Below are positions 4,813-57,643 of a stretch of DNA of 64,000 bases, piece by piece. The notes under the pieces were generated by a model, which made no database searches, had not been told where the DNA came from, and saw only the letters and a list, made by a program, of their open reading frames with translations. Source of the stretch: Lepidodermella squamata (Eukaryota; Animalia; Gastrotricha); the NCBI GenBank assembly GCA_047495785.1, contig JBLDXI010000054.1, forward strand, positions 1,798,001 through 1,862,000, in the 5' to 3' direction. Each line of letters begins with the position of its first letter. Position 1 is the stretch's first letter. The position numbers and the translations under genes are program-made.

Positions 4813-5992
4813 ATGTTTCTAAATCGAGCGCTGTTACCGATAATTATGCGCATAGTAAGCTGTGATCTGTCACCTGAACGATTTTTTCAGGCCCATGAGG
4901 CGAAGTTGCTCGCCATTTTCAGTCAGAGGTGCGATCTCTTCGCCTTCTCACGTCCATCTTCAGCACATTTCAGCACACCCATAAGCGTGTACGTAGAATT
5001 GACCGCCATCGAGTTTCGCAGTCTCGTCGACCGCGATGAAACATTCACTTTCACTGCAAAGACGGAGATCAAATGGAGCCATCCATGCACCATTTGGTCA
5101 AACGAACCAGTTTACAATGAAGTGGGCAGTATTTAATTCCATGCTAGATCTGGCATCCATTGATCTACCTTAAAAACGGAGCAACCGATTTAATGCCGTT
5201 CGAGCAGCTGAAGGATTCAACGCCAGTCTACTTTTATTCGGACGGCAGTGTATCTTGGACTATTATGCGGGAAATCACCGTTATGTGCGGGATGAATTTC
5301 ATAAAATTTCCGTTTGATAGCCAATGTTGCGATATCGTCCTAGAAAGTGGCCAGAATATAAATAAATCTACCTTCACAATGAAGCCTAATTCTCTGCGGT
5401 TTGCAAACAATGGCTTCCTTGGTAGCGCGGATGTTTGGGAGCTGACAAGCCTGACGTACCAAAATAAATCTTCTCTTGGACCGCCGGAATCAATGAAGGT
5501 ATACAACCAAGTTGTCATTGAATTTGGTTTCAAGCGAAAAAGCGTTCCTTATGTTACGAATATTCTCGTTCCATGTTTGCACTACAGATACTTCAGTGCA
5601 TGACGGGATTCATAGGCCATCAGGAGGTTGACCGAGCTATTTACATCGTCACATGTGAGTAGCCTAATATTTTTTCTGGTTAATGTAATTTTTTGTTTGG
5701 TATCGCAGTGCTTCTTACTGATCTTTTCCTTCAAACAACCATCTCAAGCCTGCTGCCAGATACGGCCGAAGTGGCTTACATCACTATTTTCATCTTGGTG
5801 CAATTCCTTACTGGGTTTATAATAACTGTATACAGCCTGGTTGCGCTCTCTCTTGGAAAGCAGAAATGGGCGCGACTTAGACTTTATGGCGAAATTTCTC
5901 GCATAGATTTTATTGATAAGGTGTTCTTCCTCGGAATTAGCGCTTTGACGATTTCCTTTGATTTCTTAATTGTTAGTCTGATGATGAATTGA
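4813..5992 (+). pseudogene. Divergent Cys-loop pLGIC subunit G1, frameshifted
   Basis: Signal peptide, RCDL, WSHPCTIW, IWHPLIYLKN, Cys-loop CGMNFIKFPFDSQCC, four TM segments, 54-nt intron 5655-5708. Frame breaks at about 5125-5150 and about 5578. Confidence 0.8.
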
Positions 5993-7680
5993 ATAATGGC
6001 TGAGGGGTAATGCGATACTTTACTTATTCAACGAGAACATAAAATGTGCTCTGGTTAATATGGACCTGGAACATAGAGAACAAAAGCACATTATCGCTAT
6101 AAATATAAATGCACTTTTATGTTCTCTATGGCCTGGAATTAATTGAAATATATTTGGCAGATAAAGGGTTGAGCAAGCCGAGGTTTTGATTTTGATTATT
6201 GATGAAATAATCAAGTCGTGATAAACTGTTCATAATCAGGAAAATAAAACAAATTTGAAAGTTCAAGCTTTCATTGTGCATTGATGAATGGAGTGAATCG
6301 GTAGGGATAAAGCCTATCCCTTATACTTCATTTTTTCACACCTGTAACAACAGCGTTACCATTTTGCATGAGTTATGGTTATGGAAACCACAGCAAACTT
6401 CGACGGGAAATTTCCCAAGTCACCACGTGATATTTTATTCTTGGGAGCAAAAAGCAAATAACTCAAATTTTGTTGATATAGTTATCGTGACTTGGCTTCT
6501 AGACCTGCTATAAACGAAATTAAGTCTCCCTGCTAGTTGTGACTTAGACTCAGCGCCAGGATGAGAATATCACAAAGAAGCATCATAGTGCCCATTGCAC
6601 TGTAAACGATGAGATCAGCTAGTCGAATCCTAGAAATTTTCCAATTCGTGCGATAAACAGTTATCAGATCCGAGTAATACGGGTCGCATGCGAGAGGACA
6701 TGCCAATAGCGTATAGACAGTTAAAATGGAGCTGAACAGCATCTGCAGCGCAATAAGAACCAACACGTATGCGATTTGGGCCGTTTCGGGTATTACTGCC
6801 GAAAGAGATGACTGGAGGACCAAAAATGACAACAAAACTAAGGAGAAAGCATCTTAACTTGAAGAGCGCTTAGTATTAGGTATTAGGTATATAAATCACC
6901 TGTTATACAAAATGAACACTTTTCTCCGTTTTCTGGCGGAATGCAAGCAGACATCAGAATTACGATTTGAAGAATGAAGCAAGGCAAATAAATCCCCATC
7001 ATGTAGACCTGGCATCTTCGCCTGACAACGAATGTGAGCAGCACTTCGTCGTATATCCGATTATTTGTCATATGATGGTATTTTCCTTGTGACAAGCCAA
7101 TATCCTCGAGTGACCAAACATCAGCATCGCTGATGAATTTCGGATCTACGGGTATGTAACTACTAGCCGGCTGCATATTCACCTTGTTAGTACTGTCGAA
7201 TGACATGAGTGGGTAAACGCATGTTTGCTTGTCGAATGGGAAGTTGGAGAAATCCATATCGCAGTAAAATTCAAGCGTAGTGGCAACTGTCAAATGAACG
7301 GCTCCACTGGACATGAAAAGTGCCCTGCTTTCTGCGGCCAATCTGCAGATAGAGATAAAATAGTAAATCAAACCATGTGGGCAAATAATGGCTTACTTTC
7401 GAAAGGGCATGCAATTGCCAACTGCTGAGGTTACTACGACAAGGGGCGTCCAAATACCACTGCCACTCACAGTGAAATATTCTGTCGAGTTGAATCTGGC
7501 GTCTGAAGACCAAGTAGTGCAAGGATTGGTCCATCGAAAGCTGACCTGAGCTATAAAGGAGAATATTTGCTTCTGACTATCTATGCCGAGAAATCTCATG
7601 GGAATAAAATCCACTGTTATATTCAGTATTTCGTGGAAGTTTTTGACTGGTCTGAATTCTGACAATAGATTGCATCGCTT

Positions 7681-10600
7681 CATAGACAATGATGTAACAG
7701 ATCGGACACTCACGCACTTGCCTGTTTACGCTAAACCATAAATTTGCACACTAATTTAAATGCATTGATTTAAAAGGTGAAAATAGTCGTAGGCCTCGGA
7801 ATTTTTTGAAACTTGGACCTAAAAATTCCTCATCTTTCAAGGATGCTAGTGATGCAAACTTCGAGGTGCGGTTCCTTCCCTATGATTTTTAAATTAGGAA
7901 AAAAGATTGTAGCGATTTTTGTCAGTTGTTAAGTCTATTTTCAAGTTTTTTTTAGCGCCACTCAAAATTTGATTGTTACGAAAAACGAACATCTGTGGCA
8001 CACTCCATTTTTATTGCAATTTTTCAGCTTTAATTTAAGTCGATCGAAAAATAGTAGATAGATATCAAAATAGAAAAAAATTGAAGCGTTTTTCATTTTT
8101 CATTCACATGTTTTGGTTTTGAGCCGCTTTACGGCTTTTCGTCGGTTGCTTCATAGCCACCTGCCGCATTTTGAGCTCATGGCGAAGGAAAGTTCCAGCC
8201 GCAACAGCGACAATCGATTTGAAGAGTTGATGAGAGTGTGGCGCAGCACCGGCGTCGAATTCTTGGCATAGGCCGTCAAGAAGCACCGGCCTGGCACAAG
8301 CCGCGTAAAAAAGCGTTCTTTGCACGGCAACGATGGGTAGTGAAGTCCTTAGGTAATAGTCCAGATTTTCACGTATGATCGACCGGACGGATTTCACGAT
8401 TCGATATACCGTCAATGACGGGCGAGTGAGACTGAAATCGTACAACTTTTAGATAACGAATTCCAAGCAAAATGTTTATTACCATAATTTTCCGTCTTGT
8501 TTTCGAAAACTGAAGCCCTTTATCACACGGCATGGAGTCAGAAGGAAATCGCGTGTCAGGGAATCGATACAGCCGGGGCATTTCAGCTTGTCAGTTAGAA
8601 GTTTTTTGACGCAAAATCCACCAATGTTGGCAATAATTTCTTCCCCAATTAGGGGGAGCGTTGCTTCGTACTCCATTCCTCTTTGCAGTAACTCGTCTTC
8701 AGCTTCAATTTCGTCCCATTCAGTTAAATCATGAAGCTCAGCAACCTAGAATAAAATAAAGTTGTTAAGAACAAATCTCCATATAATTCAAGTCTCAATT
8801 ATCGAGGCAAAATCAACCTTGGTCTGAATAAAAAAATATCGAAAAATTCAAAAAAATTATGGAAAAATCAATTTTTAAATTTTAAATTGAATTAAATCAA
8901 TTTTCGAATTATTTTCCAATAAATGAGATTTTGTTTCATAGATTTATAATAAAACCTACAACAAAATTTCTTTCACAATTTTGCAGCCTATACTAAATAT
9001 TTTTATCGGTTTCAATATTTTGGAAAAAAATAAAAATGAGCACAATTTAAGGAGGATCATCACTCACTTTTTGGCTGCTATCGTCGCCATCATACAGCGG
9101 TTTTTTGATGTGATCGAAAATCGTCACTTGGTTGAAACGCATGGTTTTTTCGACGTTTCCCTTTGCCAATACATATCTCTGGATCATATAGCCCCGGATA
9201 GCAGCAATCAACTGCTCTGGGGTCGGATTCATCGCAAAACCATTGAATTGTCGAGCAAACGAGAACAACAACTCTAGGCTGTCCTGTAGAAAATAGTAAG
9301 TCGCGACGAATGCAACGTCACAGCTGAATAAGAGGTATTCAACAACAGCAACAGTCGTTCTTATCGCTTGGACCATTCCACGCACGCCAGATTTCAATGT
9401 GCTTTCAATAGCCTTGTTGCCAACAGTGTCGGTGAAACTCAGTAAAACATCGATGCCATCTTCGAGGTGAGATTTCCAGGTCGGGAAGGTTTCCTTGCGA
9501 ACTGGGCGCCGATTGGGTTCGACATCGGAAAGATTGCGCTGGTTGAGGCAGTCCCACACTGTGTTAATAATTCGGCACAATTTCTCCGTGCCTTCGCTAT
9601 TTCCGAAATTCGTCTGATATTGAGGGATGCTACGCAGTACAGCAAGGGCATTGGCGACGCTGCCGCTGAAAATTTGTACAGCGAGTGTCACCTTCATCGG
9701 CCACTTTGCCCAAGCCAAGTGAGAACTGGTCAATTTGGTGCGAAGGTGGAGGCCAACTGCATCTTGGAGATGAACCAGTTCAACGACGTGGAGCCAATAG
9801 GCTTTGTAAATCTGGCCACGGTAGGTAAAAACTAGAATTCCCCATTTGGCAAAGAGAGCGCGAATTAGTTTTAAGCAATGAGTTGCGTCTTGGCTCCAGT
9901 ACCAACTCGACTCATGCGCAGCTGGAAACGGCGAGAAAATTTCGGTCGGAATTTCTTCAAAACCTTCCATGGTCTTTACATTCGCCCGGTGGCCATCGGC
10001 AGTAGTTACAATAGCGTGCAACCCTCGCGTTACAAACTCCTGTCGAATTTCCTTCAGAACTGCTGACTGAATTGTTTCGCAAGTCGATTCTAACAACAAG
10101 AGGCAAACCGGGTAGCACACGCCACCTGACAGTGAAACAGCTAAAAAAACTACTGCTTCGTGCGGAGGTTTGCCGAGCTGACTTTCAACATCGGGCAGGG
10201 TGTTGAATGATCCCGCGTCAACCAAACCGTGAACTGTTTCATCACCGAAATGGAAGTACTCGCCCCTTTTGATTACCATAGCGTCCATTTGGATCACGTA
10301 GTGACGCTTTGATGGCGATTTAAAACGAATCGTTTCAAGGAGAGACAAAGCCAATTGATTAAGCCCAGGCTTAACAACAACTTGAGCCAGCCATCGACGA
10401 ACTGTTCGCTCAGACGGCATGCATTTTCCGAAATATACACGAAGTTTCATTCGAGCAGAGGGCTGCAAACCTATAAAAATAATTTAAACATTTACCGGAA
10501 AAATTAAAAAATTCGAATTAAAAAATGTACAAATTAAAAATAAAAAAATAAAAAAATGATTTCAAATAACATATTTTTCCGAATTTTCCGAAGTGAAAAA

Positions 10601-11963
10601 ATTCAGATCGGTAAAAAGTATAATAATAAAAATTAATCAACGTATATTTAAAAACTATATGAATAATTAGGGAGATTTTTGATCATTTCTATAATTTTAT
10701 TGAAGCTTCAATTTGTTAAAATATGATTCGTAAATTCGATACATGAAGTATAGTTGTTTATTAGTTATAATAAAAAATAGCCAAAAAAATCAAAGATTTC
10801 TTTGAACCTGTTGCCATTTCCTTGAATAAATTTGAGTATCGTCGTCCTTTGAGCGGCTTTGATGCAATTGTTTCCATCTCGTCAACTAGTTGCTTTCCAA
10901 CCTCGCCCAGGGAATTTCGCTTTTGGTGTATTTTGTTCAATTGATTTTCAAGCGACTTCATTTTTCGCTTCATTCTGCTGCAATTTGTCTTCGCTATACT
11001 GAGTCTTGCTTTCAGTTGTTCTCGGGTGAATTGGGTTCGACCAGGCCGCCGGGCCGGCAATTCTTTCACGGCGACGGCTGCAGAGGTCGATGCAACGTTT
11101 TCCTGGGACTGGAGAGGTAAGCCGTTAGAACCACCGAAACTGTCTTGTCCGGAAGAATTTTCTGCATCTATTTGTCCACCCGAACCCGGGCCTTTTGATT
11201 CGTTAATTTTGTAAATCCCGAATTCGAGTTCATTATTGTTAAATTGGTGAAGCTTTCCACCTGAAGGCTTGCGCCTTTTCTTGAGTTCCCGAACGCGGCT
11301 GGCTCGCGAAACAAGCGCGAGTCGAAGCGAAATTTCATCTTCGTCCTCGGCCAAATTGAACTCCTTCTTCATCAGCTCTCTTTGGACTTTGTGGGTGGCC
11401 TGTCTCCAAGAAATTAACCATGAGAATCGAACTTTAACAACCCGCATATTAAGAAATGCCGCATGCCCGCATGCTATATTAAGAAATATTAAGAATGTTA
11501 AGAAATTAAGAAATCAGCAAAATTAAGAATTAACTGAAAACTAAACATGTTAGGTTTGCATTTAAAATGAAACTCAATAAAAATGGGTAGGAAATAGATT
11601 TCAAGAAATCCTCCTTAAAAATTTCCTCTGAAGTGCTGACTTTAATGACACATGCACACAACAACTTTACATTTTTCGAATGCTTATTTTTATCGAGTGA
11701 GCATGGCACGCGATGACGCAACACAACAATACAGAGTGTGAGTAATCGATTTTTCGATATTGATTTTCTCGGCAACGAAATCGAACCGCACTACGGGACT
11801 TGGATCATTATTACCGTAAAAAAATGCCCGATTTTTCGATATTTTTTTCAAGAATTTAGGAGAACAACGACTTTTCGGCCGGATTTATAATGGCCGATCC
11901 ACGCATAATTAGTGTTTCAATGCGAAGTGCGTGAGTGTCCGATCTGTACCATCATTGTCTATG
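7681..11963 (-). mobile_element. P-superfamily DNA transposon, 4283 bp, apparently full length
   Basis: 39-bp TIRs (CATAGACAATGATG..ACAGATCGGACACTCACGCACTT, 37/39 identical). Perfect 8-bp TSD CATCGCTT at 7673-7680 and 11964-11971. Contains a P-type transposase. Confidence 0.95.
8104..11447 (-). CDS. P-element/THAP9-like transposase, multi-exon (true start not resolved)
   Basis: Coiled coil then GRRYS, MPSERTVRRW HTH, catalytic IQMDAM, TTADG, QDATHCLKLIR, QDSLELLFSFARQ..NPT, C-terminal IGGFCVKKL..CPGC. Exons join in frame across introns at about 10471-10807, 8747-9068 and 8432-8482. Confidence 0.9.
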
Positions 11964-12294
11964 CATCGCTTGACCATTTCTTGATATACTAAAGCTTCCT
12001 CAGTCAGAAAAACATTTTCCTCGGTTGCTGTAACCGAACAAGCCATAGACAATAACAATAATGCGATTATGATCATAGCTGTGTGAAATTCTACTGTAAC
12101 GCCCATCGCCATTGCTGTCAAATATTTTGGGTGAGGGAATACTTGGCGAGGATATTGCAATAGGAGAGTACTCAATTTTAACCGGAATTTCGTAATCGAA
12201 ACGTAAATAAACCAGAGCTATCGGTGCATATTTTTTTATATTGGCAAGACTTCGAGCGCATTCTGTTTTTCATCCAATGCATTTTTATTACATA

Positions 12295-12472
12295 TCATGA
12301 CGCAATAATGGCAAATAGTAAAAAATCAGCTAATGTTTTGACAATTAAAACAACGTAGTAAAAAAAGAAATCGAGCACGCGTATCCGGGATATTCTCATG
12401 GGCCATTTCGTAAAGGGGAACGGTTCAGTGAATATGACTTTTTGCCTATAATACGCTCTGTCCGATAAATCG
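12295..12472 (-). pseudogene. Orphan copy of the 3' end (M3-M4 loop and M4) of pLGIC G4, marking a tandem-duplication breakpoint
   Basis: 5 mismatches in about 178 bp versus 17166-17343. Confidence 0.9.
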
Positions 12473-12929
12473 GATGTAGGAAATTTAGGGAATAAAGTTA
12501 GGATAAAGTTTCAAGCTTTGTGCATTTGCCAATGGAGGGATTCGGTAGGGATAATCCCTATCCTCTATCCTTCATTTTTTCACAGCTGTTTTCATCAGCG
12601 TTCCCATTTTTCCACAATTATGAAAACCACAAACCTTAATTGGAAATTACCCAAGTCACCATGTGATATTTCATTATTGATAACAAAACAGAGGAAGCTA
12701 CATAGTAAAAATAGTTATCCGGATCATAGTGGGAAATATGACGTAAAACAACCCGGAATATTTCCTGCTATTCCGGGCTGTTTGAGCCAGGATATCTTGA
12801 TATCCGGGCTGATTTAAACCCAAGTCATGGCTCGAAATTTTGCAGCATTTACCTCTATTTTCGGTTTCTTTAAGCACGAAAACAAAAGTCACGAAAATAC
12901 TGAGACGCCCATAGACATAATTTAGGATA

Positions 12930-13490
12930 GACTGCTTACTCACGAGAAAAAGGGTGCTACGCCATGGGCGCCAGATGGACAGCTGATTCATCAGCGCTTG
13001 GAGGAAAAGTAAACAAAATATTCGATTCTTTTTTTACTGGTTCCGTGACGGTTTTGATTTTCCCAAGGGTTTGGTTGATGGATCCAGACAGAGGAAGTCA
13101 CGAGGAACACGTTGGTTATTTTTTCGAAATTTTTGAAGGAATTTTAACTGGTTTTATAAACAAAAAACGGTTTCGCAGTTATAAATAAAAATATAGAATT
13201 GTCGTCAAAAATATAGGTCGAGTTGCTTTGACAATTCGATATTTTACGGTATAACATTCGTAAATCGTTCATATCTGAACTCGCCGCACTCGATTTACTC
13301 TTCGTAACTCGCCTCCGGCTCGTCACGACTCGTAAATCTCGGGCGGCTCCGTACAGATATAAACGTTTTACTCATGTCATACCATACAAATATATTTCAT
13401 GATCACTTAAATTGAAATTGAAGCAGTTTTTTGGTGGTCCAGGTAGCCCACATCGTGGTCCACATTTCAATACTTGGAGCGACCTTCGAT
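12930..13490. repeat. Dispersed MITE-like repeat containing a long imperfect palindrome (13239-13393)
   Basis: Shares blocks with 4060-4300. Palindrome arms of about 75 bp with repeated CTCG/CGAG mismatches. Confidence 0.65.
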
Positions 13491-13967
13491 GATTTTTTAC
13501 TGATTTTTTAGGAATTTTCAAAATATCACCAAGCGAAATTGGCATTATATTGAAAGAAAGGCCCTACTACAATCTTTTTCCAGCTACGCCATGTGGGTGT
13601 GGCGCACGTGCTGTCAACAAAGATTCCAACTGGACTCATGACTGTATTCATCTTCGGTTCCTGCGGAACCTCGATTCATACAGTCATTCGTACAAGAAAA
13701 GTGTTTCTGTATTCTGACCCATCCAAGATTGCTTAAATCTTATTTAAGTATTTGTCCTGCTGGATCCTTGATCAGACGTTACAAGCGAATCTGAGGTCGT
13801 ATTGGCTGCTAATTACGTATTTTCCGAATGTTGTATGGTTAAAGAAACATAAGCCGTTTAACACTTTAACTGCCAAACAATAGACTGCGAGGTCCGATAT
13901 TTGGGTCTAAATCCTGGGTCTGTCAAAAAGTCCTTTTTTCGGGTCAACGATGTGTCGTAGAGCAGAA

Positions 13968-14250
13968 TGCCTGACAGCGAAATGTCATGATCCGGCGGTT
14001 CTTTTGACACCGAATTTGAGGCCACAAGGTCTGAGCAGGTCATAGAAAATAACAGTGAAATAACGGCGAAATGTTGGATTAGAGCCAAAAATCAGACCCA
14101 AGAATTGGACCTATTAGACCCAGATCATGGCGCAACAATCGAAATTTCAGTGTTTCTTAAGTTTGATTTCTGTGCGTTCCTTGAAGTCTTTGGCCCCGAA
14201 TTTGGTGTTAAAAGAACCGCCGGATCATGGCCTACATTTTGTCGTCAGGC
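13968..14250. repeat. Inverted repeat pair (MITE remnant)
   Basis: CATGATCCGGCGGTTCTTTTGACACCGAATTT versus AATTTGGTGTTAAAAGAACCGCCGGATCATG. Confidence 0.6.
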
Positions 14251-14593
14251 TGTCAGTGTTGTACCATTTATTTCAACGTTTTGGTTTTAAGATGGATTTT
14301 TTTTCGTGAAATGACTCTTCCCATGTGATTTTTCGCATTTTTAGGGGCATAGACCCACGTAACAGGAGAGGGTAACAGCTTCCTCCCGAGTACTATGTAA
14401 CATAGAGCCCACGATACGGCCAGTTTCTTGGAAAAATCTCGAAACTGGCCTCCTCTAGGGCTCTATCTATACACGATACAGAAGATACGATACAGATCTG
14501 TACATATAACTACCCCAAATTGTGTTGATATAGTTTTCAGGATTTGGCTGTTATAGACCTGCCATAAACGAAATTATGACTCGTTGTGACCTG

Positions 14594-16981
14594 CTAGTTG
14601 TGACCTAGACTCAGCGCCAGGATGATAACATCGCAAAGAAGCATCATAGTGCCCATTAAACTGTAAACACTGAGATCAGCTAGGCGGATCCTAGATATTT
14701 TCAAATTTGTGCCATAAACAGATATCACATCCGAGTAATATGGATCGCAGGCCAAAGGACACGCCAATAACGTATAAACGGTTAAAATTGAGCTGAACAG
14801 CATCTGCAGCGCAATTAGAACCACAACGTATGCGATTTGGGCTGTTTCAGGTATTACTTCCGAAAGATACGACTGCAGCACCAAAAACGACAATAGAACT
14901 AAGAGTAAAAGCTAGAAACTTTGAGATCTTCCAGAAAATCATGAATAACTTGCCTGTTATACAAAATGAACACTTTTCGCTGTTTTCTGGTTGAATGCAA
15001 CCAGACATCAATACTACAAATTGAAGGATGAAACATGGCAAATAAATGCCTATCATGTAGATCTGGCATTTTCGTCTGACCACGAATGTGAGCAGGATTT
15101 CGTCGTATATCCGATTAGTCATCAAATGACTGAATTGCCCATGTGACATGCCAATATCCTGGAGTGACCAGACATCAGCATCGCTAATGAAATTCGGATC
15201 TAGGGGTAAGTGACTACTAGCTGGCTTCATATTCACCCTGAGAATACTCTCGAATGACATGATAGGGTAAACGCAGGATTGCTGATCGAACGGGAAGTTG
15301 GAGAAATCCATGTCGCAGTAAAATTCAAGTGTTGCGATCATCACCAATTGAACTAATCCACTGGACGTGAAAAGTACCCTGCTTTTCGCGGCCAATCTGC
15401 GTGGAGATAGATAATCAGAGTTATGAATCCTTTTCAAGCTTTATAATATGCGATAATGGCTTACTTTTGAAACGGCATGCTGTTGCCAACTGCTGAGCTT
15501 ACCAGGACAAGGGGTGTCCAAACATTGCTGCCTTTGACAGAGAAAAATTCTGTCGAGTTGAATCTGGCGTCTGAAGACCAAGTAGTGCAAGGATTCGTCC
15601 ATTCGAAGGTGACTTGGGCGATGAAGGAGAAAATTTGTTCCCACATGGTTGGTTATTTTTTGCTTCAATGGAAAATGTGATTCCGCCCGGTGTTTCCGCC
15701 CGGTGATTCCGCCCGCTCACGCGTTTTAAGGTGGATCTTTTATTATTAATTTCGGTTAAAATCCAAATCATTGAATTACTGGGCGAACCAGACTCCATTT
15801 AGGGATTGGACTAGCAAAGCAAAAATTTGAACCAAGGAAAGCATTTTAACAAAAACCATTTTTATTGAACAATAATACTGTGGGAGAGCTTATAAACAAT
15901 ATTCAGTTCTGGATGTGACATGCACCGTGCAGTAAATTACTTGACAACTGGCGTCGACCGTGAAATGGCGTGATTCAAACCGGTTCTTCAGGCTTAACAG
16001 GATCACAGCCCAACAATGCCAATGCCGTCGCTTCGCATAGAGATTTTCCACCGAAAGTCGTTGAACAGCATAGTCGGCGTATCGTTTCCTGGAATTTTGC
16101 ACCGTGCCAATTGTCTCAAGCGCCAATTCTTCGATGTATTGTTGCAGTTATTCAGCAACGCCTTCAAATTAAGCTTCGTCATCGCCGTCGGATTGAACGC
16201 TGGAATCTGATCGGCCAAGAGGAAATTCGGGCTTTTGCTATAGCAGCTCGATATCTTGAGCATTGCGGTTTTCACGAGCTGATTGGTGTCGCTCAGACTG
16301 CAACAGCCATATCCATTTGCTTAGAATCGACTGCGTTTCCGAGGATTAAATCGCCGATGCCGTGCGTGGTTTCAACCAACAAAGAATTCAGTGCAAAAAT
16401 TGATTTAAAAAAGGAATGAAACAATTAGAATTTGTTAATCGATTTTTTAAGGTTGATTTTTTAATTTCAACAAAATTAATTTAGTCAGACACAGTGGGTA
16501 TGAGTGTTTAGGCATTTTATCCAGATTTCCAGTGGAAAATTGGGTTTTTATTCAGAAAATAACCAACAATGTGGGAACAGGAATCCTAAACTTGTGTTTC
16601 GGGCAAAAACTCGATTTCAGCCCTTGAAAATACCCTCGGGCTTCGCTTCGCTACGCCCTCGGGCATTTTCAGCGGGCCGAAATCTCGTTTCTGCCCTCAA
16701 CACCGTTAAGGATTCCTTAATTTCTGGCTATCCATGCCGAGAAATCGCATTGGTAGAAATTTGACGGTGATATTCAGTATTTCTTTGAAATTGCCGACTG
16801 GCTTAAAGTCGGATAGCAGATTGCACCGAGTTGACATTTCCTGATAAACTAATGCCTCGTCACTCATGAACACTTTTCGTTCAGCTATGTCGGTTGTTGT
16901 AGCCGAGTAAGCCGTTGAAAATAACAACAAGGGGACTATGATCATAGCTATGTAAAACTCCGATGTAACACCCATCGCCAT
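14594..16981 (-). pseudogene. Divergent Cys-loop pLGIC subunit G3 (closest paralog of G2), exon 1 interrupted by a 1083-bp insertion
   Basis: Removing 15638-16720 restores LGMDSQK-QIFSFIAQV. Cys-loop CDMDFSNFPFDQQSC. Same intron positions as G2. Confidence 0.88.
15638..16720. mobile_element. Non-autonomous insertion with asymmetric inverted repeats and a terminal palindrome (Crypton- or Helentron/HINE-like, unresolved)
   Basis: 24-bp IR at 15636-15659 and 16556-16579 (1 mismatch), palindrome at 16580-16716, terminal TTAA, 13-bp tandem repeats GTGwTTCCGCCCG near 15677-15715. Inserted at TT with no longer TSD. Confidence 0.75.
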
Positions 16982-17166
16982 CTCTGTCAAATATGTTGAG
17001 GATGGGAGTTTTAGATGAATGTATTGCTGTAGGAGAGTACACAATGTGAACCGGAAATGCGTAATCGAAACGTAAATAAAGCGGAGCCATCGGTGCCAGC
17101 CCATTTTTTAATTTCGCAAAACTGCAAGCGCACATTATATTTCATATAATGTATTTTTATTAGACA

Positions 17167-18520
17167 TCATGACGCAATAATAGCAAATAGTAAAAAATCT
17201 GCTAATGTTTTGACAATTAAAACAACGGAGTAAAAAAAGAAATCGAGCACGCGTATCCGGGATATTCTCATGGGCCATTTCGTAAAGGGGAACGGTTCAG
17301 TGAATATGACTTTTTGCCTATAGTACGCCCTGTCCGATAAATCGTTTACAATTAAAGCGTAACCAGTGATTACAAATCCGGCAACTAATTGAAATGCAAT
17401 GAAAGATTCTACATGCGTAATAACAGCTGATTTTGGCATCTCTTTGGTTATATCAGACTGAAGGAGAATGTAAGCCAAAAGTACGGTTATGCAGAAAACA
17501 GCTCGATCTGGATATTTGGCCGGAATCCAAAAGGACAGGACACTAAGGGTTTGCAGAACGATGCAGGGTAGAAAGATGTTATTCATGTAAATGCTGAATT
17601 TTCTCGAAATCACGAATGTGATGATAGTTCTGTCGTAGGTCGCATTATCGCTCAAAAATACGAGCGATGCATTTTTCGTCCTTATGTCGATAAGTTCCCA
17701 GACTTCGGCTGGAGATATGAAGTCCACGCTAGAAATATCGAGGCCTTTGCCTTTGAGTGCGATTCGAATCTTCTGGCTTTCGTCCCATGATTCCAGGACC
17801 AGATTGCAAGTTTGCCGGTCGAATGGAAACTTTCGGAAGTCCAAGTCGCAGAAGACTGAAAATGTTGTCATGATTTGCCATAGAACTGTTCCATCGGATT
17901 GAAAGAAAACCAAAGATTCTTTAGCCAGTCTAAACGAAACTAACGAAATAGGAAATTTAGAGAAAATCAATTGTCCTCACTCGTCGAAAGGCATGACTTG
18001 ACTGATAGCGTTGTTGATACTCAACCCGGGGTACCAAACTTCCGAAGCCTTCATTTTGAAGTATTGAATCGAGGTTGGAGAAGTGCTGTTCCATGATGTG
18101 CAAGGATGTGCCCAAACGAAGTCTATCTCTCCAACAAAAGAGAACCTTATATCGGTCTAATTCAAGATTATTTTATTCGAAGTAAGAAAGTGCTCACGTT
18201 TGCTCGCGGTCCTTTAATCCTCTGAATCTCAGCGGTATGAAATTTACGGAAACATGAATTGCCTCGGAGTAGTTCCTAAGAGGCCTTGCGTTAGACTTGA
18301 GATTGCACTTTTTTATGAAAGACTCGATGAAAAGCTTCTCCTTCGATACAAACGACGGCATTGATTTCAGATCATCGCAAGGGAGGGATGAGCAATTTGC
18401 GATAATCGACCGATAGGGATGACTTGTCCGGAGCAGAAACTGACTCGGTTTGCAATCGACATAATTAAGGCTAAGGATCGTGATTAAACTAGGTAGAAAA
18501 TGCAATCGAAGCATTTTCAT
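17167..18520 (-). CDS. Divergent Cys-loop pLGIC subunit G4, intact, 3 exons
   Basis: Signal peptide, KCNL, WAHPCTSW, Cys-loop CDLDFRKFPFDRQTC, loop B ESWD, M2 DRAVFCITVLLAYILLQ, short M3-M4 loop. Introns at about 18146-18197 and 17929-17980. Confidence 0.9.
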
Positions 18521-18779
18521 CAATTGCTAAAATGCATCTCTTCAAGACATCTCAAATGTATGTATTAATCGATACACATTGACAACAGGTGTTTATTCAG
18601 CATTAATTATAAATCGCCCATAATTTTGTCGCGTTACTCATGCGGAACTTAATCTCTATTTACTTAAGAATAGGTAAATACCAACTAGCTGTGATATACT
18701 GATCGATCTTGAACAGATTTAGCTGGAATTTGTTCGACAAAAAATGTCCAGAGGGTTCGTGCCAACATTTTTTATTACT

Positions 18780-20118
18780 TCAAGTCGAAATAAGCGCAAA
18801 AATGCTCAAATCAGCTAGAGCTTTCACGAAGAAAATCGATGTGTAGAAAATGAAATCCAAAATTCGAATCCTTGAAATCACCATAGGCATCTTAGTGAAT
18901 GGGAAATGCTTGTTAAACTTAAGATCAGACATGTAATAAGACTTGTCAGCCAAATCATTAGCAATCAAAGCATAGACAGTGATAACAAAAGCAGCTGTTA
19001 GTTGAAACGCAAGGAAAAACTCAATGTTCGACACTAAAGCAGACTTTGGAGTGTCTTTTAGGATCTCAGCCAAGAGTAGGACATCGGCCAATAGTACTGT
19101 CGTGCAAAACACCGCTCGGTCAGGGTGTTTAGCCGGCATCCAAACTGACAGCAGGCTCAGAATTTGTAGGACAAGGCAGGGTAAGACGATATTATTCAGA
19201 TAAATGCTTGATTTTCGGCGGATTACGAATGTTATAACAGCTCGGTCGTAGGTGAAATTATCGGCCACAAAAACTTCAGTTGTATTATAGGTCCGAACAT
19301 CCGATAGCTTCCAAACCTCGGAGGGACTGATGAAGTCATCAGTTGTCATGGACAAGCCTTGGTCTTTGAGGAACAGTCGTATCTTGGATTCATCATCCCA
19401 CGATTCGAGGATCATGCTGCAGGTTTGTATGTCAAAAGGAAACTTTTGAAAATCGAGTTCACAGAAGACGGAGAAAGTTGACATTATTTGCCATGAAACT
19501 GTCCCATCCGAATAAAAGAAAGTTAAAGTCTCCTTAGCCAGGCTAAATAGTCACAGATATTAAATAACAGCTAAGAGAGCTGCTACTAACTTACCTATCA
19601 AATGGCATAACATCGCTTATCGCATTGTTTATGGCAAGACCAGGGTACCACACTTCAGACGATCTCATTTTGAAGTAAGGAATGTGGCTGTAGTTGGTAT
19701 GGGTCCATACCGTGCAAGGATGTTTCCAAGAGAAATCGACCTCGCCAACAAAGGAAAACCTTAAAAAGCCAAATTTTGAGATGGATTTCCCTTTGATCTA
19801 GGTTAAAACTAACTGTTGCTCTCGGTCTTTAATACCCCGGAACCGTAGGGGCTGGAAATTGACTGATACGTGAACTGCCTGCGAATAATTCCTGAGAGGT
19901 CTAGCGTTAGATTTCAAATTGCATTTCGACACGTAGCTCTCAATGAAAATCCTTTCCTCTGCCACAAAACTTGTGAGAGTGTCAAGATCGCCACATGGAG
20001 TCGAGCAGTTATTGATAACAGCTTGATACGGGTGGTTAAGCCTCAACGAGGTTTGGCTTGGCTTTCCTTGAATAGGAGTCAGCCAATCGATGAAAAAAAG
20101 TAACGGCACTACTATCAT
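18780..20118 (-). CDS. Divergent Cys-loop pLGIC subunit G5, intact, 3 exons
   Basis: Cys-loop CELDFQKFPFDIQTC, ESWD, M2 DRAVFCTTVLLADVLLL. Two roughly 50-nt introns at the same positions as G4. Confidence 0.9.
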
Positions 20119-20291
20119 GGTTTCTATTATAATGAAACATGTGTCTTTGCCACCATTTGATCATCCCCCTTAAGAATTGATTTTCTTCTCAGAGCTCACT
20201 CAATAATGCATAGGGTGATCGATCTCATTTATTTTTTATCAATTTAAGAAACTTTATTCATATACAGCAATTAACGGAGATTTATTTTTGT

Positions 20292-21712
20292 CTATGACGT
20301 TATCAGACCAAATATGATAAAATCGGAAATTAACATGACGAACCCGGTGGCGCTATAGAAACAAATGTCAATAAATCTATTGCGCGAGAATGAGTTTTTG
20401 AACGAAAGTGTAATTTTGGCATCCTTCATGAAGTAGTCACGTGGGCTCAGCTCGTTGGTGATCAGGGCGTAGACGGTAATTACAAAGCTTGAGGCGAGCT
20501 GCACGCCGAAAAAGACGACCACGTAGGCTATTTCGGCAGATTTTGGCATAGAACTCGTAATGATTGATTGCAAAACCACATAAGCCAATAGCACTGAGAA
20601 AAAATCGTAAAATTACTTATTGAATAAGGTTAAATCGTCAAATCACCTGTTATGCAAAATACAGCTCTATCCGGGTGATGGCCAGGCATGAAACCAGACA
20701 TCAGAATCAGAAATTGAAGCACAAAAGCAGACAGGAAAATGTTGACCATATAGCTTTTGTACTTCCTCGCAAAATCGAAGGTAACAATGACTTGATCGTA
20801 GACTAACGGACTACCAGCGTAAGTTCTGGTCTGGTTTCTCGCAGCGGCATCGTGAAGCTCCCAAATATCAGCTTCTGTGATGAAATCGTCAAAGTCGATA
20901 TCGAGGCCTTTGCCCCTCAGGAATAGTCGGATAATTCGAGTGTTTTCCCAAGATTCGAGGGTTATGCTGCATTCCTGTCGGTCAAATGGGAACTTTTTGA
21001 AGTCGAGTTCGCAAAACACGGAGAATAGTGACATAACTGGCCACATTACGGTTCCATCAGCATAAAAGTAGATTTGACTCCTCTTCGCAATGCTGGAAGA
21101 TTGAATTTTCAAGTTTTTAGGATCAAAGATCAAAGTAAACTTACTCATCAAATGGAGTGATTTCACTGATAGCATTGTTAATGCTCATAGTGGGGTAGTA
21201 GGTTTCTTCAGCTGTCATTCGGAAGTAATCAATGTTTCCGAAAGATGTGTCAACCCAGCTGGTGCAAGGATGGTCCCATCGGAGATCTATTTCACAAACA
21301 AGATTGTACCTGAAAGAGAAGAAATCCTATTTAAACATCGCTGCATTTATTTCTAAACTTACGTTTGCTCCCGATCCTCCAGGCCACGGAAAAACAGGGG
21401 TATGTAATTGACGTTAACCATTAAAGGCTCGGAGTAATTCTTGAGAGGTCGAACTTTGGCAGCCAAGTCGCATTTGGAAATGACAGTTTCTCGTAAAATG
21501 GCCTCGTCAGCTTTGAAGGTCTCTTCCTCGGTTTCGTTCTCTGCGTGAGACTCAGATGCATCAACGACAGGCTCCGGCATAGCTGAGGCGATGTCTGTGA
21601 TTGATTCTGCCGTCATGTTCCCATCAAAATCTTGTTTCGATGCCACATATTTTGAAATTGAGCAAAGTAAGGCAACTATTAAAAGTTTAGAGCCAATTTT
21701 CCAGAGCAGCAT
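20292..21712 (-). CDS. Divergent Cys-loop pLGIC subunit G6, intact, 4 exons
   Basis: Signal peptide plus acidic N-terminal extension, Cys-loop CELDFKKFPFDRQEC, ESWE, M2 DRAVFCITVLLAYVVLQ. Three short introns. Confidence 0.9.
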
Positions 21713-22746: not shown

Positions 22747-23985
22747 ATGACAGCTAAGCATGTAGGCACTTTTATTATACTAACTCTCGTCATAATCGCA
22801 TTTCATTCACTTGTGAATGAATCAATCATATACTCAAAATTTCCGCATATTCGCCGCGGATCAAATCTGCGGTCAGCCAGCGAGACGAATGCTGATCTGT
22901 TGCAAGAAATGATGTGCAACTTCAACGCATCTCGATGCAATTTCTCGAGCGGATTTTCAGAGGATTTCCGCAATTTTTCAAAATCAGCTTTCAGCGCTAT
23001 GAGGCATAATACTATCCTAGTTGTGGTTTTCAACTTCGCTTCCAATTACGAGGTCGCTCCGATGATCGAATCGATGTATGGCAATATTATCAGCGAAATC
23101 CGATATTGTGGGCCGTCGCGAAATTCTTCAGATTTCATAGATCGAATTCGAAATTACTACAACGGTTCGAAAGTTCTAGTAGATCATCTCGAAAAGCGAT
23201 TTATCAACTATGAATTGGAAAAGCCGAGATATAAGGGAGCGGGGGAGACTGTTTACCACTGCATTAATCTCGCTGTGGGAGCTTCTAAAATTCCCTATCA
23301 CGAATTGAACGGGATATTTCTAGTTCATGACGATGCCTTGATCGGCTATTGGAAATTTCTGTTCCAGCCTTCATATTACGATTTATCGAGGAGCTACCCG
23401 ATGTCTCGAAACAATTTCTTCTACAATGTCGACACGCTCGATCGATGTGAAAAAGAATGCGTTTATATAAATCATTGGTCGAATTGGCCGACTTACTACG
23501 CGAACGAGACTTATGCTTACTTCAACGAATTCGAAGCTCTGGCTTGGAGAAAAATCGAGCCTTACAGAACTTGCTTCGAACGGCTTAGCAATGTTACAAA
23601 CGGGCCTCGTCGGGTTATCAGAGGATTGTCTGATTTATTTTACATTTCAAAGAAGGATATGAAGGTTGTTATGACAATTTTCGATTTGATGGCGAAGCAT
23701 CACGTTTTTCAAGAAGTTGCCGTAGCCACAGCGTTTTCATGCCTCGACAGGCCGGGTTTTATTGATGATCGCAACTGGTATACAATGTCGCTGCCAGAGC
23801 TGCCTGATTACCTAATTAACTTTGATCTGGCAATGCCGCTGCATCCCCTTAAACTGTCTTCATTGGCTGCTTACGCTCTTCACAGTGATCTTTACGAGTC
23901 TAATGAAGAAATATCTGCTAAAACTTGTATTTATTGCGAATTTTTGAGATCTGCAAAATATTTGTTGACACATCATAATGTGTAA
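22747..23985 (+). CDS. STELLO/DUF288-like putative glycosyltransferase, type II membrane protein, intronless
   Basis: N-terminal TM anchor. Motifs ILVVVFN, IRYCGP, YHCI, GIFLVHDDA, SDLFYI, VFQEVAVAT, HPLKLS. Confidence 0.75.
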   Translation: MTAKHVGTFIILTLVIIAFHSLVNESIIYSKFPHIRRGSNLRSASETNADLLQEMMCNFNASRCNFSSGFSEDFRNFSKSAFSAMRHNTILVVVFNFASNYEVAPMIESMYGNIISEIRYCGPSRNSSDFIDRIRNYYNGSKVLVDHLEKRFINYELEKPRYKGAGETVYHCINLAVGASKIPYHELNGIFLVHDDALIGYWKFLFQPSYYDLSRSYPMSRNNFFYNVDTLDRCEKECVYINHWSNWPTYYANETYAYFNEFEALAWRKIEPYRTCFERLSNVTNGPRRVIRGLSDLFYISKKDMKVVMTIFDLMAKHHVFQEVAVATAFSCLDRPGFIDDRNWYTMSLPELPDYLINFDLAMPLHPLKLSSLAAYALHSDLYESNEEISAKTCIYCEFLRSAKYLLTHHNV

Positions 23986-28889: not shown

Positions 28890-31148
28890 ATGAATAACCT
28901 TTTCACGGTAAGAATTACGATGGCACTGTTCAGCTTCCAAGCCTTCTCCGCTGCTACAAAGCCTTTCAACATGTCCATCTTAGGTATTGTTCCCAACTTC
29001 GGAGCCATGTGCAAGCTGGGCACTGATCTTGTGATTGAGACTATCAATGAGCGTTCGGATATTCTCCCCGAATACAACATCGTAATGGAATGGAAGGACG
29101 AAGTCGATCCGGCTATTGGTTACTCACCACTTGTCGAATTTCTGAAATTTAGAGAATCTCCACCGAATGATAACACCTTTCAAGCTCCGCTGTATCTCAG
29201 CGGATTCTACTCCAGCGGAAATATCCCTCTTGGACGAACTCTACACCACTTTGATTCTGTCGGTATATGCTTTGCGTGCGGATCTCCAGTTTTAGTAAAC
29301 CGCAAAGCATTTCCAAATTTGTACCTAACAGTGACTTCAAGTGATATTGTGGTGTCAGCTTATGTCAAATTTATGAAGGTGATCGGGAAATGGACAAGGA
29401 TTGGGATATTAACAACTGTTCTAAGTGACTACGACTTCATGACCGCGAAATACTTCTACCAGTTCGCGAACGATGAAAATATGACGATACCTTACTTCAA
29501 CGCTGTTTTAGGAATCGATAGTTACGTCATTGAAGAAATAGTGAATAATGACCTTCGAATCATCTTCTTACCCCTGAGCATTTCCCCGATGATTTGGTCT
29601 TTCCTCTGTCTCGCATACAAACGTGTGTTGACAGGGCCTCGTTACATGTTCTTCGCCGATTCTTTCACAGCTCAAAATCCAGAAAGCATTCCTAAAACAG
29701 ACATCGTAGAAAAAGATTGCACCAGCAAGATTCTAGCGGAGCAGTTCAAAAGTGTAATCTTCGCAGGGCAAGAATTGTCGCCTTTCGACAAGTCTCGGAA
29801 ATCTGAGATGGGATTTTCAATTAAAGAATTCGACTCACGGATCGATGCTAAACTTGGATTCCACAGTGAAGACAACACCCTGGCTTACTTGATGAAGGAA
29901 TAGAATACCTCGATCAAGACGCATAGCAGCAGGAAACAAGTCGCTAAGGTGATGAATGAATCAGTTTTAGCCTCAAATCGCGCCGGTTTTCGACATCAGT
30001 TGCGCTACAACCAGCGTGGAGCTAATGATGAAGACATTGTCACTTTCATGCGATGGAATGGATATAAATTTCTCACCAATTAACAAAGCCAGCCGAAAAA
30101 TCAGGGTTTCACTATTGAGACTGCACCTTCTGGTCTTGCCTTCGAAACATGGTTTGGCGGTCGCCCAAAAGATGCAGCATGGCAGCGAATCATTGTTGAT
30201 GGAGTCTCAAAACCTGTTGCTATATCAGTGTTCATTTTCAGTGTAGCTGTCTCGTCTGCTCAAGTTGTATCAATCGTTTTGCCAATATCCCTACAAAGAA
30301 TTAGGCTATATGGCTCGCTGGCAATAGCGAAACTATGTTGCATTGTTGCATGCACGTTGATGAATGTGGGATCAGTGCTAACTGTCATAGAAACAACGGG
30401 AGCAATTCAAGTTAGTAGAATCGTTGTTTTCACAACCTCTCTATCTTTCATCAATGGAATCGTCAGCTTTCGAGCAATCAACCTATTTCGAACAAGCTGT
30501 CAGGCTGTAAATGCTCTGAAGAGCCGACCTCTCTCCAATGGCCGTATCGCCCTGCGTAGGGAAAATTCCAATCAAATCAAGGCTGCCGTTCAAGAAATGG
30601 AAATTGGTGCTTCAAACTCATTGATAAAGCGCTCCCTTTGCTTTCTAGGATTGAATTTAGCTGTTGTGATAATTTGGCTTTCAAGTGATGGTTTCATTTG
30701 CACATCCATCCCAAAAGACTCTGGATCATATTATGACCTAGTTTCCGACACTTACTTCTCAATTGAGCTGCGTCGATGTGGCGTGACATGGAATACTTCG
30801 ATGATATTGGTTTTAGCCGGCATTCAAGTTGCCCTCATGGTTCTAGGCTGCATCCAGGCTGTTCGACTCCGGCCTTTAGTTGAGGTTCTCAAAAATCACG
30901 TTACTTTGCCGTCTGCGTCCTTAATTACAAGATTAGCTAGTATGAACGCTCTGGTGCTTTTCGTTTGCGTGTTTGTTTTGGCTATCGCTACTTCATCGCA
31001 GAAATTGCAACAGATTTTCGTGGCTTATGGAGCTCTGACTCTTTCTACATCAACTTCGGTCATTTTGCTATTTATGGATCTGAAAATGATCTTCTTCAAA
31101 CCGCAAAGCAACAACCGCTCATCGCGAAATGTTTCCATGGGATTGTAA
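28890..31148 (+). pseudogene. Class C GPCR pseudogene, duplicate of 38565-40874
   Basis: In-frame 57-nt deletion near 29890 (loses CHDTAVTGIMALQDTNLLL), TGG>TAG at 29901-29903, TAC>TAA at 30081-30083. Confidence 0.9.
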
Positions 31149-33130: not shown

Positions 33131-35270
33131 ATGGTCACTAAACACTGTATTTTGGTCTTATTCGCCTGCATTACATGTTCGGGGGGCGAAACGATGCCCG
33201 AAATGCTTACTTCGCTACCACGACTGGATAGTCTTCTCTTCTACTTCCCGACCGGTCTTATTTGGAAAATCCTTGTTTTCGACAAGAACGGCAATACCAA
33301 TACGTTTGTCACGAACCCTCGGTCATCGATGACCAAACCTGGTGGGCCTTATGGAGGTGGGTCGTATACGACACCTATAAATGGTAACGGGCTAGCTATA
33401 TCTGAATTTCCAGCAATGACTGAGCTGACCATCGCCTTTTACTACTTCGGACCGTGCGATCAAAATGCAGCAGTTATCATGTCGATGTTTGTGAACATAT
33501 ATTGCAGCGCTAATAACTTTCGTGTCCGCGATGGCTTGGGAAATCTATTGTCGTATAACTTTCCGTATACGACGCCGAACGAATGGCAATTGGCAATCTT
33601 TACATACAACAACGTTTCAAAACAACTGTCCTACTACAAACAGACTCTCGCTGATCTTACACCAACGTCCCTTCCACAAATTGATGTAAATTTGCAGTCG
33701 TCAACTTCTGGAGAAGTTCAGGTCGGAACCGTGCATGATGGACATGATTTTATAAACATGAATGAGGCGACTCAAAGAATTGCATGCGTAAGCTACCATT
33801 CAGTCGTACTGACAATCGAGGAAATGGCGAGATTGTCAGTAGCATGTAGCCAATCGCAAACAACAACTACTTCAACTGAACAAGTCCCTACTACAACGAC
33901 AACAACCTTGGCACCAAGCGAAGCGACTACTACAACATCGGGTACAACTTTCCAGTCTATTTCAGTTTCAGATCCGATGACATCAACGCAGGGAAGCCAG
34001 GAAACCTCAGAGAAGCCGGTAGCTTCAAGTTCGAACTTAGAAACTGCATCTTCAACAACATTGACAACGACGCCTGCTAATACCTCATTTATTGAATTGA
34101 CCGCAAGCCTAGCAACGCCCCAGCAGGCTTACCCAACTTCGACTGTTGATGGCGAGCTAAGATTAGGTAGCACGCGATCTGCCCAAAGCCTAATCGAGTA
34201 TTTAGATGACTTCAAAGAGCCACCCCCAAGCCGAGCCTTTGATACAGCCGAGAATGTCCTGAAAAATTGCGACCACTTCGAAAATAGCAGATTTTCTCCA
34301 CCCCAAATCGACTTGGAGAAACCTAATATTGTCAACATCACATTTGAAGTCCCCAGCCTGTTAGAATTATCTACCTCCGATGATACAATATCAGTTAGCG
34401 GCATTGTGCTTATGTCATGGAGAGTCAACACAGATTTACGTTGCTAAGCCTGATCAAATGTGGTTGCCGCAAATAAGATTTGTAAACAGTGCTCATTTGA
34501 ATATCTACATGAAGAATGTAGCTGTCGGGGACGATTTCTTGGTAACTATGGACGGAGCAGGTTTGGAGTTGGAGCCAAACAAAACCTTCAACTTCTACTG
34601 GACAAGGGAAGGCTTCTTCAAAGCCGATCGCATGCAGATCATTACGGATTTCCCATTCGATACTCAGACATGCATTTTCGAGTTTAGTCTCACGAGATCT
34701 CGTAGAATCTTGACATTCGCCGACCTGCCGACTTTTCTCTGGCGTATCGGGGCAGTTAGTAACACTGAATGGGTTGTCAAGGATCTCTCAAGTCGTTTGT
34801 CCTGGACACGCTTTAACGGATTCAATGTGACCACCGCTGTGTTCGAAGTCACCCTAAAGCGGCTTCCGAGGTATTATATCGACAATCTATATCTGCCAAC
34901 AGCAATTCTGGGTGGGCTAGACCTTGCAACGTTCTTCATGGCCGCTGCTATGCCTGAACGACCATCCTTCACCGTGACCATCCTCTTGGCAATGGCTGTA
35001 TCACAAACGGAGTTAATCAGCGGGTATGCAAGTGCGGATAGTACTATACTCAGCAGTTACATGCAAATGATGGCTTGGTTCTCGGCTGCGGTCACCCTTT
35101 ACCAAATGATTGCTCTGTGGCTAGTACGTTCTGTGTTTGTGGGGAAACGCACGATGAAGAGGCTGCTGCGGGGCCACATCAGTCTGGTCAGGCTTATTGA
35201 TGCTATAGCCTTCGTCGCAGCTTTGGCATTTTTCTGCTTCGCCAACGGCTTCGTGCTCAGCAAGTATTGA
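33131..35270 (+). CDS. Chimeric pLGIC G7: signal peptide, LamG/pentraxin-like domain, Thr/Ser stalk, Cys-less pLGIC; one frameshift at about 34423-34447
   Basis: LamG-like pattern ELTIAFYY...EWQLAIFTYNNVSKQLSYY...IACVSYHSVVLTIEEMARL. About 100-aa T/S-rich stalk. Channel motifs MWLPQIRFVNS, TDFPFDTQTC, LKRLPRYYIDNLYLP, PERPSFTVTILLAM, four TM. Confidence 0.75.
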
Positions 35271-57170: not shown

Positions 57171-57643
57171 CATCAAAAAGTCATCTTCGGCCGGGTATGG
57201 GCGTAGCACCTTTTCGCGTCGACGACAAATTCGTGATATTAATTTCGACTTTTTAAATTTGCCTGAAGCGGTTCTGCATTTCAAACAATTTCAAATAAAT
57301 ATTTCGGGCGATTCCATACGGCTATTTCCGATTAATTTTTCATAAAATATAGCATACCGTATTTGTTCCAATAGCAGCCCGAGCCAGTAAATTTTTAACC
57401 TGGAAATTTTGAAAATTTCAAAAAATAATTGTAGGTGAATCTTGTCGCCGGATGCTGCGTAAGCTGTCATCTGAATCACTGAAACGCAGCCCACTCGATT
57501 TTAGAATTTCCAGTCTTTATTGATGTCCAATGTCCCCACCCTGCATTTTCTCATTGTTTTTTTCATTAACTCTTTCACTGCCAGAGTTTTCTCCTGGAGA
57601 ATTTTTTCTCACGGGAGTTTTTCTCCCCGGAGAAACCAAACTT

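Follow-up and report, generated by a model that had tools for sequence, protein, structure and literature searches.

Tandem, intron-poor and highly divergent arrays of nicotinic-like genes, pseudogenes among them, are well described in molluscs, and the bivalve arrays have been connected with responses to stress and with immunity rather than with chemosensation (PMC6896357). The chemotactile receptors are nicotinic-type proteins that arose from nicotinic receptors, lost acetylcholine binding and expanded in tandem (as summarised in PMC11526382). The wider pentameric ligand-gated ion channel (pLGIC) superfamily also has known Cys-less and protist members (Jaiteh et al. 2016, PMC4795631), and its absence from ctenophores and from the majority of sponges has been reported (PMC13335744). 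Here we describe six paralogous Cys-loop (pLGIC) genes, g1 to g6, at positions 4813-21712 of a 64-kb stretch (the window) of contig JBLDXI010000054.1 of the gastrotrich Lepidodermella squamata. The explanation that best covers all observations, and a probable one, is that the genes specify divergent cation-type Cys-loop subunits with a short linker between membrane helices M3 and M4, gated by a ligand other than acetylcholine and organized in a cluster evolving by birth and death.

The window is eukaryotic DNA (~41% G+C) with very short spliceosomal introns (~52 nt). A list of open reading frames (ORFs), Pfam and tblastn comparison of the copies with one another located all six, which bears out the six paralogs in 17 kb announced in a preliminary description of this DNA. 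Pfam domains Neur_chan_LBD and Neur_chan_memb were found in ORFs of g1–g6 with E-values of 1e-8 to 1e-17, above the curated cut-offs (in g4, 2.4e-15 for the ligand-binding domain and 1.1e-12 for the transmembrane region). The outer limits of the cluster coincide with start codons, 4813 being the ATG of g1 on the + strand and 21712 that of g6 on the - strand. We assembled the gene models manually on three-frame views, by sequence logic alone, and verified them by translation, with the following result:

4813..5992, + strand: g1, pseudogene; exons 4813-5654 and 5709-5992, with one 54-nt GT-AG intron inside M2.
6533..12112, - strand: g2, split; coding pieces 12112-11964, 7672-7397, 7342-6900 and 6837-6533, giving a 391-aa frame.
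14594..16981, - strand: g3, split; coding pieces 16981-16721, 15637-15465, 15396-14954 and 14898-14594, giving a 394-aa frame.
17167..18520, - strand: g4, intact, 417 aa; exons 18520-18198, 18145-17981 and 17929-17167.
18780..20118, - strand: g5, intact, 411 aa; exons 20118-19814, 19759-19595 and 19542-18780.
20292..21712, - strand: g6, intact, 421 aa; exons 21712-21363, 21309-21145, 21092-20647 and 20593-20292.

The translated models divide the cluster into halves, as had been noted at the outset: g1, g2 and g3 are broken and g4, g5 and g6 are intact. The intact genes have open frames, GT-AG introns of 51-54 nt (three of them in g6, of 52-53 nt), three, three and four exons, respectively, and an AATAAA hexamer 3' of each stop codon. 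The third intron of g3 has a GC-AG boundary.

In the alignment of g1–g6, all six copies carry the C-x13-C loop with FPFD, and none has vicinal cysteines in loop C, where the window genes show SD, AD, GS, TN or MT. The vicinal pair is present in the bird alpha10, Octopus and Amphiura sequences aligned with them. Loop B varies exactly as first described, with ESGQ in g1, MSFD in g2, MSFE in g3, ESWD in g4 and g5, and ESWE in g6. Comparison with bird alpha10 and bat beta2 showed that the loop D tryptophan of the acetylcholine site is replaced by E, Q or K and that the loop A tyrosine is lost; remnants of the aromatic box are the loop B tryptophan, in g4–g6 only, and one loop C tyrosine, in all six copies. 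All six genes thus specify atypical Cys-loop channels that lack the canonical acetylcholine site. The window genes differ from nicotinic receptors in having no vicinal cysteines, in having lost most of the aromatic box and in their linker of ~13-25 aa, in place of a long loop. An additional pair of cysteines recurs in every one of the six copies and in the majority of their relatives: the first belongs to K-C-N-L, ahead of the first strand, and the other to H-P-C, which follows the second strand; we infer that these residues may form an extra disulfide.

A very short M3-M4 linker is another trait of these genes. An AlphaFold model covering the 267-aa g4 ORF, not the full-length protein, was obtained with a predicted local distance difference test score (pLDDT) of 86, and shows four transmembrane helices, M1–M4, with an M3-M4 linker of 25 aa. 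By alignment, the linker measures ~13-25 aa in the other copies, with large gaps relative to alpha10 and beta2. The loop is therefore short, as first described, and slightly shorter than the ~20-35 aa given at that time. Searching solved structures with the g4 model (Foldseek) returned only pLGICs among the top 50 matches, without discrimination between subfamilies; at the sequence level, g4 matches 307 solved pLGIC sequences (E < 1e-3). The subunits show the complete channel architecture, with a beta-sandwich ligand-binding domain and the four helices. The gating elements are conserved, including the 9' leucine of M2 and the pre-M1 arginine. Residues -1' and 0' are DR in g1, g4, g5 and g6 and EK in g2 and g3, so that the cationic-type pattern (D/E followed by R/K) initially reported holds in all six copies. 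The full pre-M2 motif, from -2' to 0', reads P-D-R or G-E-K, with a proline at -2' in most copies, and differs from the P-A-R that marks the anion-selective branch.

Relatives of these genes are distant. A word-index protein search with g4 gave one match, a sea slug protein at 26% identity. An exhaustive HMMER search of 1.84 billion representatives gave 5,521 matches, none above 39% identity, and neither search found a close relative or an ortholog in any annotated genome. The best annotated matches are predicted proteins in which tandem 'nicotinic-like' genes of bivalves (Mactra, Argopecten, Pinctada) and of a hemichordate have been fused. Two scans of Joint Genome Institute (JGI) metagenomes added only relatives of 22-30% identity.

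Phylogenies were inferred with FastTree on 126 units and with IQ-TREE (LG+C20) on 50 rows, the latter rooted on an Artemia pHCl-like group. Among the 23 nicotinic-like rows are alpha10 and beta2 of vertebrates, an acr-16-like subunit of Octopus and mollusc-type expansions, and the trees were built without 5-HT3, ZAC, GABA-A and verified chemotactile receptor sequences. In the IQ-TREE analysis, the five modelled window genes group to the exclusion of the closest sequence from outside the window (100/100), and with the metagenome protein P0004 they form a clade that is also supported at 100/100. Together they lie inside a clade of 24 rows (95/90), whose non-window members, where looked up, are all unannotated proteins of ENA or Logan (16/16). 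The members of this clade share the short M3-M4 linker, the P-D-R pre-M2 motif and the extra cysteine pair in the alignment; the pair, the motif and an identity of at most 30% set the clade apart from nicotinic receptors. Taking the window genes out of the clade was rejected by the approximately unbiased (AU) test (p = 9e-5). On this basis the clade is robustly distinct from the other sampled sequences. In the maximum likelihood tree it is sister to all 23 sampled nicotinic-like rows (97/93), with the Artemia pHCl-like sequence in an outgroup position.

We compared a clade profile with solved structures, among which the nicotinic subunits score 178-160 bits. The best scores were obtained for nicotinic alpha6 (178 bits), alpha4 (175 bits) and alpha7 (~164 bits), followed by Alpo4 (158.1 bits) and 5-HT3A (157.6 bits). 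All of the best 60 solved structures (178-154 bits) are nicotinic, Alpo4 or 5-HT3A chains, and neither GABA-A, glycine or GluCl chains nor any chemotactile receptor is among these 60. Because the top 60 are all of cationic types, the family falls on the cation-type side, and the acidic residue at -1' in six of six copies, together with this profile affinity, points to membership of the cation-type branch. The proteins 5-HT3A and Alvinella Alpo4 are themselves of cation type and come close behind the nicotinic subunits; at ~20 bits below the best of these, they show no specific affinity to the clade. Alpo4, an invertebrate orphan of the nicotinic-like type, lacks a canonical response to acetylcholine.

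Several observations weigh against the explanation favoured here. With g4 as a single query, cationic and anionic channels nearly tie, nicotinic beta2 scoring 77 bits and GABA-A beta3 75 bits. A proline at -2' is usual in anion channels, and selectivity could for this reason be atypical. The intact copies g4–g6 retain the loop B tryptophan and two loop C aromatics, with which a ligand of the amine or choline type would be compatible. Finally, the AU test retains placements of the clade inside the nicotinic-like radiation, with the mollusc-type sequences (p = 0.52, equal likelihood), with the Octopus pair (p = 0.28) or with the vertebrate type (p = 0.09). As nesting is not rejected, we make no claim of an origin outside the nicotinic family. 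Of the independent, lineage-specific radiation proposed in the preliminary description, the distinctness of the clade has held up, and its independent origin is compatible with the AU tests, as is a nested one; the phylogeny proposed there as a check was carried out for the clade, nicotinic-like rows and the pHCl-like outgroup.

The superfamily, the cation-type branch, tandem arrays, few introns and pseudogenes are common to the window genes and the mollusc nicotinic-like expansions (Jiao et al. 2019, PMC6896357). A general resemblance to cephalopod chemotactile receptors lies in the lost acetylcholine site and the tandem layout. Chemotactile receptors are defined by their expression in sensory cells, those of the sucker, by their hydrophobic or environmental ligands and by their descent from nicotinic receptors within cephalopods. 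With the prokaryotic and Cys-less Pro-loop channels GLIC, ELIC and sTeLIC, the last of which is among the best fold matches, the window genes have the minimal M3-M4 linker in common. Nevertheless, g1–g6 differ from such channels in being eukaryotic Cys-loop genes with FPFD, spliceosomal introns and an animal cationic sequence affinity.

Nearly all of the metagenome proteins in the clade can be traced to one source. Contigs L001, L005 and L033-L036 all come from BioSample SAMN13674978 (ENA assemblies) and represent a gene-dense, intron-poor animal genome (38% G+C in L001). Because the contigs share this BioSample, one animal carries at least 20 paralog groups that are mutually less than 50% identical. 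The family occurs there as single, mostly intronless genes or as tandem pairs, with homeobox, cyclic nucleotide-gated (CNG)-type channel, Sushi-domain and aminotransferase genes as neighbours. A kynurenine aminotransferase beside one relative is 53-63% identical to anything named and grouped, in a quick tree, with a marine catalogue sequence next to arthropods. L034 also holds 5S rRNA genes.

The history of the cluster was reconstructed from identities, introns and lesions. Pairwise protein identities among g1–g6 range from 26% to 78%: 78% between g2 and g3, 64% between g4 and g5, 45-48% between g6 and g4 or g5, and 26-32% between g1 and the others. The g4, g5 and g6 genes are old duplicates, with saturated synonymous sites and a proportion of nonsynonymous differences (pN) of 0.23-0.37. 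The g2/g3 pair is younger (synonymous divergence dS 0.51, nonsynonymous divergence dN 0.13). Introns are found after R-E-Q in g4–g6 only, after P-F-D/K in all copies except g1, and in M2 in g1, g2, g3 and g6, a pattern that fits stepwise intron loss along the tree. The other features inside the cluster are:

7681..11963, - strand: P-element-like DNA transposon, 4,283 bp, in the first coding exon of g2.
12298..12472, - strand: orphan 3' fragment of g4, a copy of its last 59 codons, directly upstream of the g2 start.
15638..16720, strand unassigned: g3 insertion, 1,083 bp, non-coding, within a coding exon.

In tblastn, the orphan fragment shows 96.6% amino-acid identity with residues 209-267 of the g4 ORF. 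It is part of a block, 12472-11970, that matches 17344-16831 (the 3' end of g4 and the 5' end of g3) at 82% overall. The duplication that separated g2 and g3 took the last 59 codons of g4 along, and these survive as the orphan fragment. Within the block, DNA identity is ~96% in the g4-like part (12298-12472 versus 17170-17344, both on the - strand) and ~78% in the remainder; because the two values occur within one block, later gene conversion between the fragment and g4 is likely.

Each of the three broken copies was inactivated in its own way. In g1 (aligned as a read-through with X at each break), there is an in-frame TAA at 5134-5136 and a -1 frame shift at both ~5150/5151 and ~5576. The frames of g2 and g3 are fully open (391 and 394 aa) once the insertions are left out, and g2 has no other lesion; since the reading frames are otherwise untouched, both insertions are recent. 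The g2 insertion is a DNA transposon of the P-element/THAP9 type. It has terminal inverted repeats matching at 37 of 39 bases, an 8-bp target-site duplication (CATCGCTT, at 7673-7680 and 11964-11971) and a transposase of the TNP-like type, encoded by an ORF at 9047-10468 with Pfam TNP-like RNase H N and C domains and a GTP-binding insertion domain. A further long ORF lies at 10761-11447. Given the long ORFs, the near-identical ends and the intact target duplication, the element may have been active recently and is possibly autonomous; no second copy was found within the window.

The boundaries of the g3 insertion were fixed by comparison with g2. It contains 27-nt internal inverted repeats (15636-15662 and 16553-16579, 93% complementary), a 13-nt repeat pair at 16579-16717 and an in-frame stop, and no other copy of it was found within the window. 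We rejected an intron at this site, as no GT-AG or AT-AC ends exist at any allowed offset. That the disruptions as a whole are artefacts of unrecognised introns was also rejected: g4–g6 splice cleanly while g1–g3 do not, so the disruptions are real. Altogether, an old split among g4, g5 and g6, the younger g2/g3 pair, the duplicated g4 fragment, the decayed pseudogene g1 and the two copies killed by insertions support birth-and-death evolution of the cluster, in agreement with what was first proposed. The growth of the cluster would have involved tandem duplication, progressive intron loss and probable gene conversion, and its shrinkage point decay (g1) and hits by insertions (g2 and g3).

Selection was estimated from sequence pairs. 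For g2 and g3, dN/dS is 0.25 overall (extracellular domain 0.30, membrane domain 0.15), and both copies were on this account under constraint for most of their separate history. In sliding windows along this pair, the ratio of nonsynonymous to synonymous proportions (pN/pS) peaks at 0.7-1.0 on the region of loops B, F and C and falls to 0.08-0.2 in the transmembrane domain; as pS is low at the peak, it is only a hint. Among g4, g5 and g6, the extracellular domain does not evolve faster, with a pN of 0.20-0.32 versus 0.21-0.35 in the transmembrane domain.

A seventh, divergent member of the family lies beyond the cluster, so that the window holds seven members within 64 kb:

33131..35270, + strand: g7, identified by tblastn and a weak Pfam match to the ligand-binding domain.

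The g7 product is extended at its N terminus by ~330 aa, including a linker rich in Ser/Thr; it has an arginine in place of the first cysteine of the Cys loop, the pre-M2 motif P-E-R and a short M3-M4 linker. The missing cysteine and the additional N-terminal region are reminiscent of Cys-less Pro-loop channels. A change of reading frame is required between 34365 and 34445, with no space for an intron that would spare a conserved tryptophan strand, and g7 is therefore probably a pseudogene or affected by a sequence error.

The cluster adjoins three long, intron-free ORFs resembling class C G-protein-coupled receptors (GPCRs), all on the + strand (25298-27793; 28890-29903 plus 30228-31148; 38565-40874). 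They show an ANF_receptor ligand-binding region followed by ~7 hydrophobic segments, and a word-index protein search gave no database relative for the class-C-GPCR-like ORF. On contig L001, a class-C-GPCR-like gene of 25% identity is found 3 kb from the pLGIC pair; since L001 repeats the arrangement of the window, the two families adjoin in two organisms. An ORF of 863 aa at 42114-44705 (- strand) encodes an NB-ARC domain followed by ankyrin repeats, an NLR-like architecture. Two others on the + strand, 22747-23985 (412 aa) and 46029-48035 (668 aa), each have one N-terminal hydrophobic segment and no Pfam match. Homology of the 412-aa ORF with a 412-aa gene beside the L001 pair was considered and rejected. 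Other mobile-element remnants are a MULE transposase domain (564-1217, + strand), a possibly Penelope-like GIY-YIG ORF (37446-37913, + strand) and a gypsy-type RNase H/integrase ORF (57530-59560, + strand), making the region rich in transposons. Rfam gave no match in the window.

If g4–g6 indeed encode divergent, short-linker, cation-type subunits, these would assemble as homo- or heteropentamers, as is usual in the family. The pentamers would be predicted, from a motif, to conduct cations, and an extracellular ligand other than acetylcholine, bound at subunit interfaces, would open them. Gating would proceed without the portals of the cytoplasmic membrane-associated (MA) helix and without the anchoring sites of synaptic receptors.

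To what such channels might respond can be argued in more than one way. They may be divergent conventional receptors, or additional subunits of such receptors, that respond to an internal signal (an amine, a choline-like compound, a peptide, protons or a metal ion) in neurons, muscle or other tissues. We consider this possible, though somewhat short of an even prospect. The conserved gating machinery with its acidic ring at -1', the loop B tryptophan and loop C aromatics kept in g4–g6, the purifying selection, the unrejected nesting inside the nicotinic-like radiation and the presence of the orphan Alpo4 and of pH-gated members among the structural and sequence matches are all compatible with such a role. 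Yet with a near-absent intracellular domain, the usual region for synaptic anchoring and trafficking is missing, core transmitter receptors rarely show a local cluster in which half of the copies are dead, and no ortholog was found in any annotated genome, the best match being only 39% identical.

The genes may instead encode ionotropic chemoreceptors, used in sensory or epidermal cells to detect environmental chemicals in parallel to the cephalopod chemotactile receptors. A tandem, lineage-specific expansion with pseudogenes and a lost acetylcholine site would fit this role, as would the raised g2/g3 ratio on loops B, F and C relative to the transmembrane domain, the adjoining class-C-GPCR-like genes here and on L001, and the at least 20 divergent paralog clusters in one related organism. 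Chemoreceptor families typically lie in tandem clusters, and an origin from nicotinic receptors has its precedent in the chemotactile receptors (PMC11526382). Overall, however, selection is purifying, the extracellular domains of g4, g5 and g6 are no more variable than their transmembrane domains, the g2/g3 peak owes part of its height to low pS, and comparable bivalve expansions are tied to stress and immune responses (PMC6896357). A chemosensory role is in our view a tentative proposal, slightly less probable than a response to an internal signal. What remains, beside a small share for a dead cluster, falls to other roles, for example a use in stress or immunity such as that proposed for the bivalve expansions (PMC6896357). 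That the 'intact' copies are a decaying relic, not expressed or not forming channels, is very improbable: three of six copies are broken, g7 also requires a frame change and transposons (P-like, MULE, gypsy and GIY-YIG) abound in the region, but g4–g6 are old duplicates with saturated synonymous sites that have kept open frames, canonical splice sites, gating motifs and AATAAA, and constraint acted on g2 and g3 up to the time of the insertions.

Our results show a genomic pattern that is not new, because tandem divergent nicotinic-like arrays are documented in molluscs; what is new here is the particular unannotated clade, without an intracellular domain and with sequence hallmarks of its own. 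The cluster illustrates the birth and death of genes cleanly and on a small scale, two of its copies having been inactivated recently. Subunits that are naturally almost free of an intracellular domain are attractive for structural and biophysical work, as they resemble the engineered, loop-deleted constructs used in cryo-electron microscopy. Confirmation of a separate clade would add a distinct branch to the tree of animal Cys-loop receptors. It is conceivable, although we would not expect it, that the window genes and their metagenome relatives represent an old cation-type branch without an intracellular domain that grew into a large family in sparsely sampled invertebrate lineages and serves there as ionotropic sensors of external chemicals. 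If true, this would be a further independent transition from transmitter receptor to chemoreceptor, beside those of the ionotropic receptors in insects and the chemotactile receptors in cephalopods, and, once confirmed, the family would provide another test case for the repurposing and expansion of transmitter-type channels.

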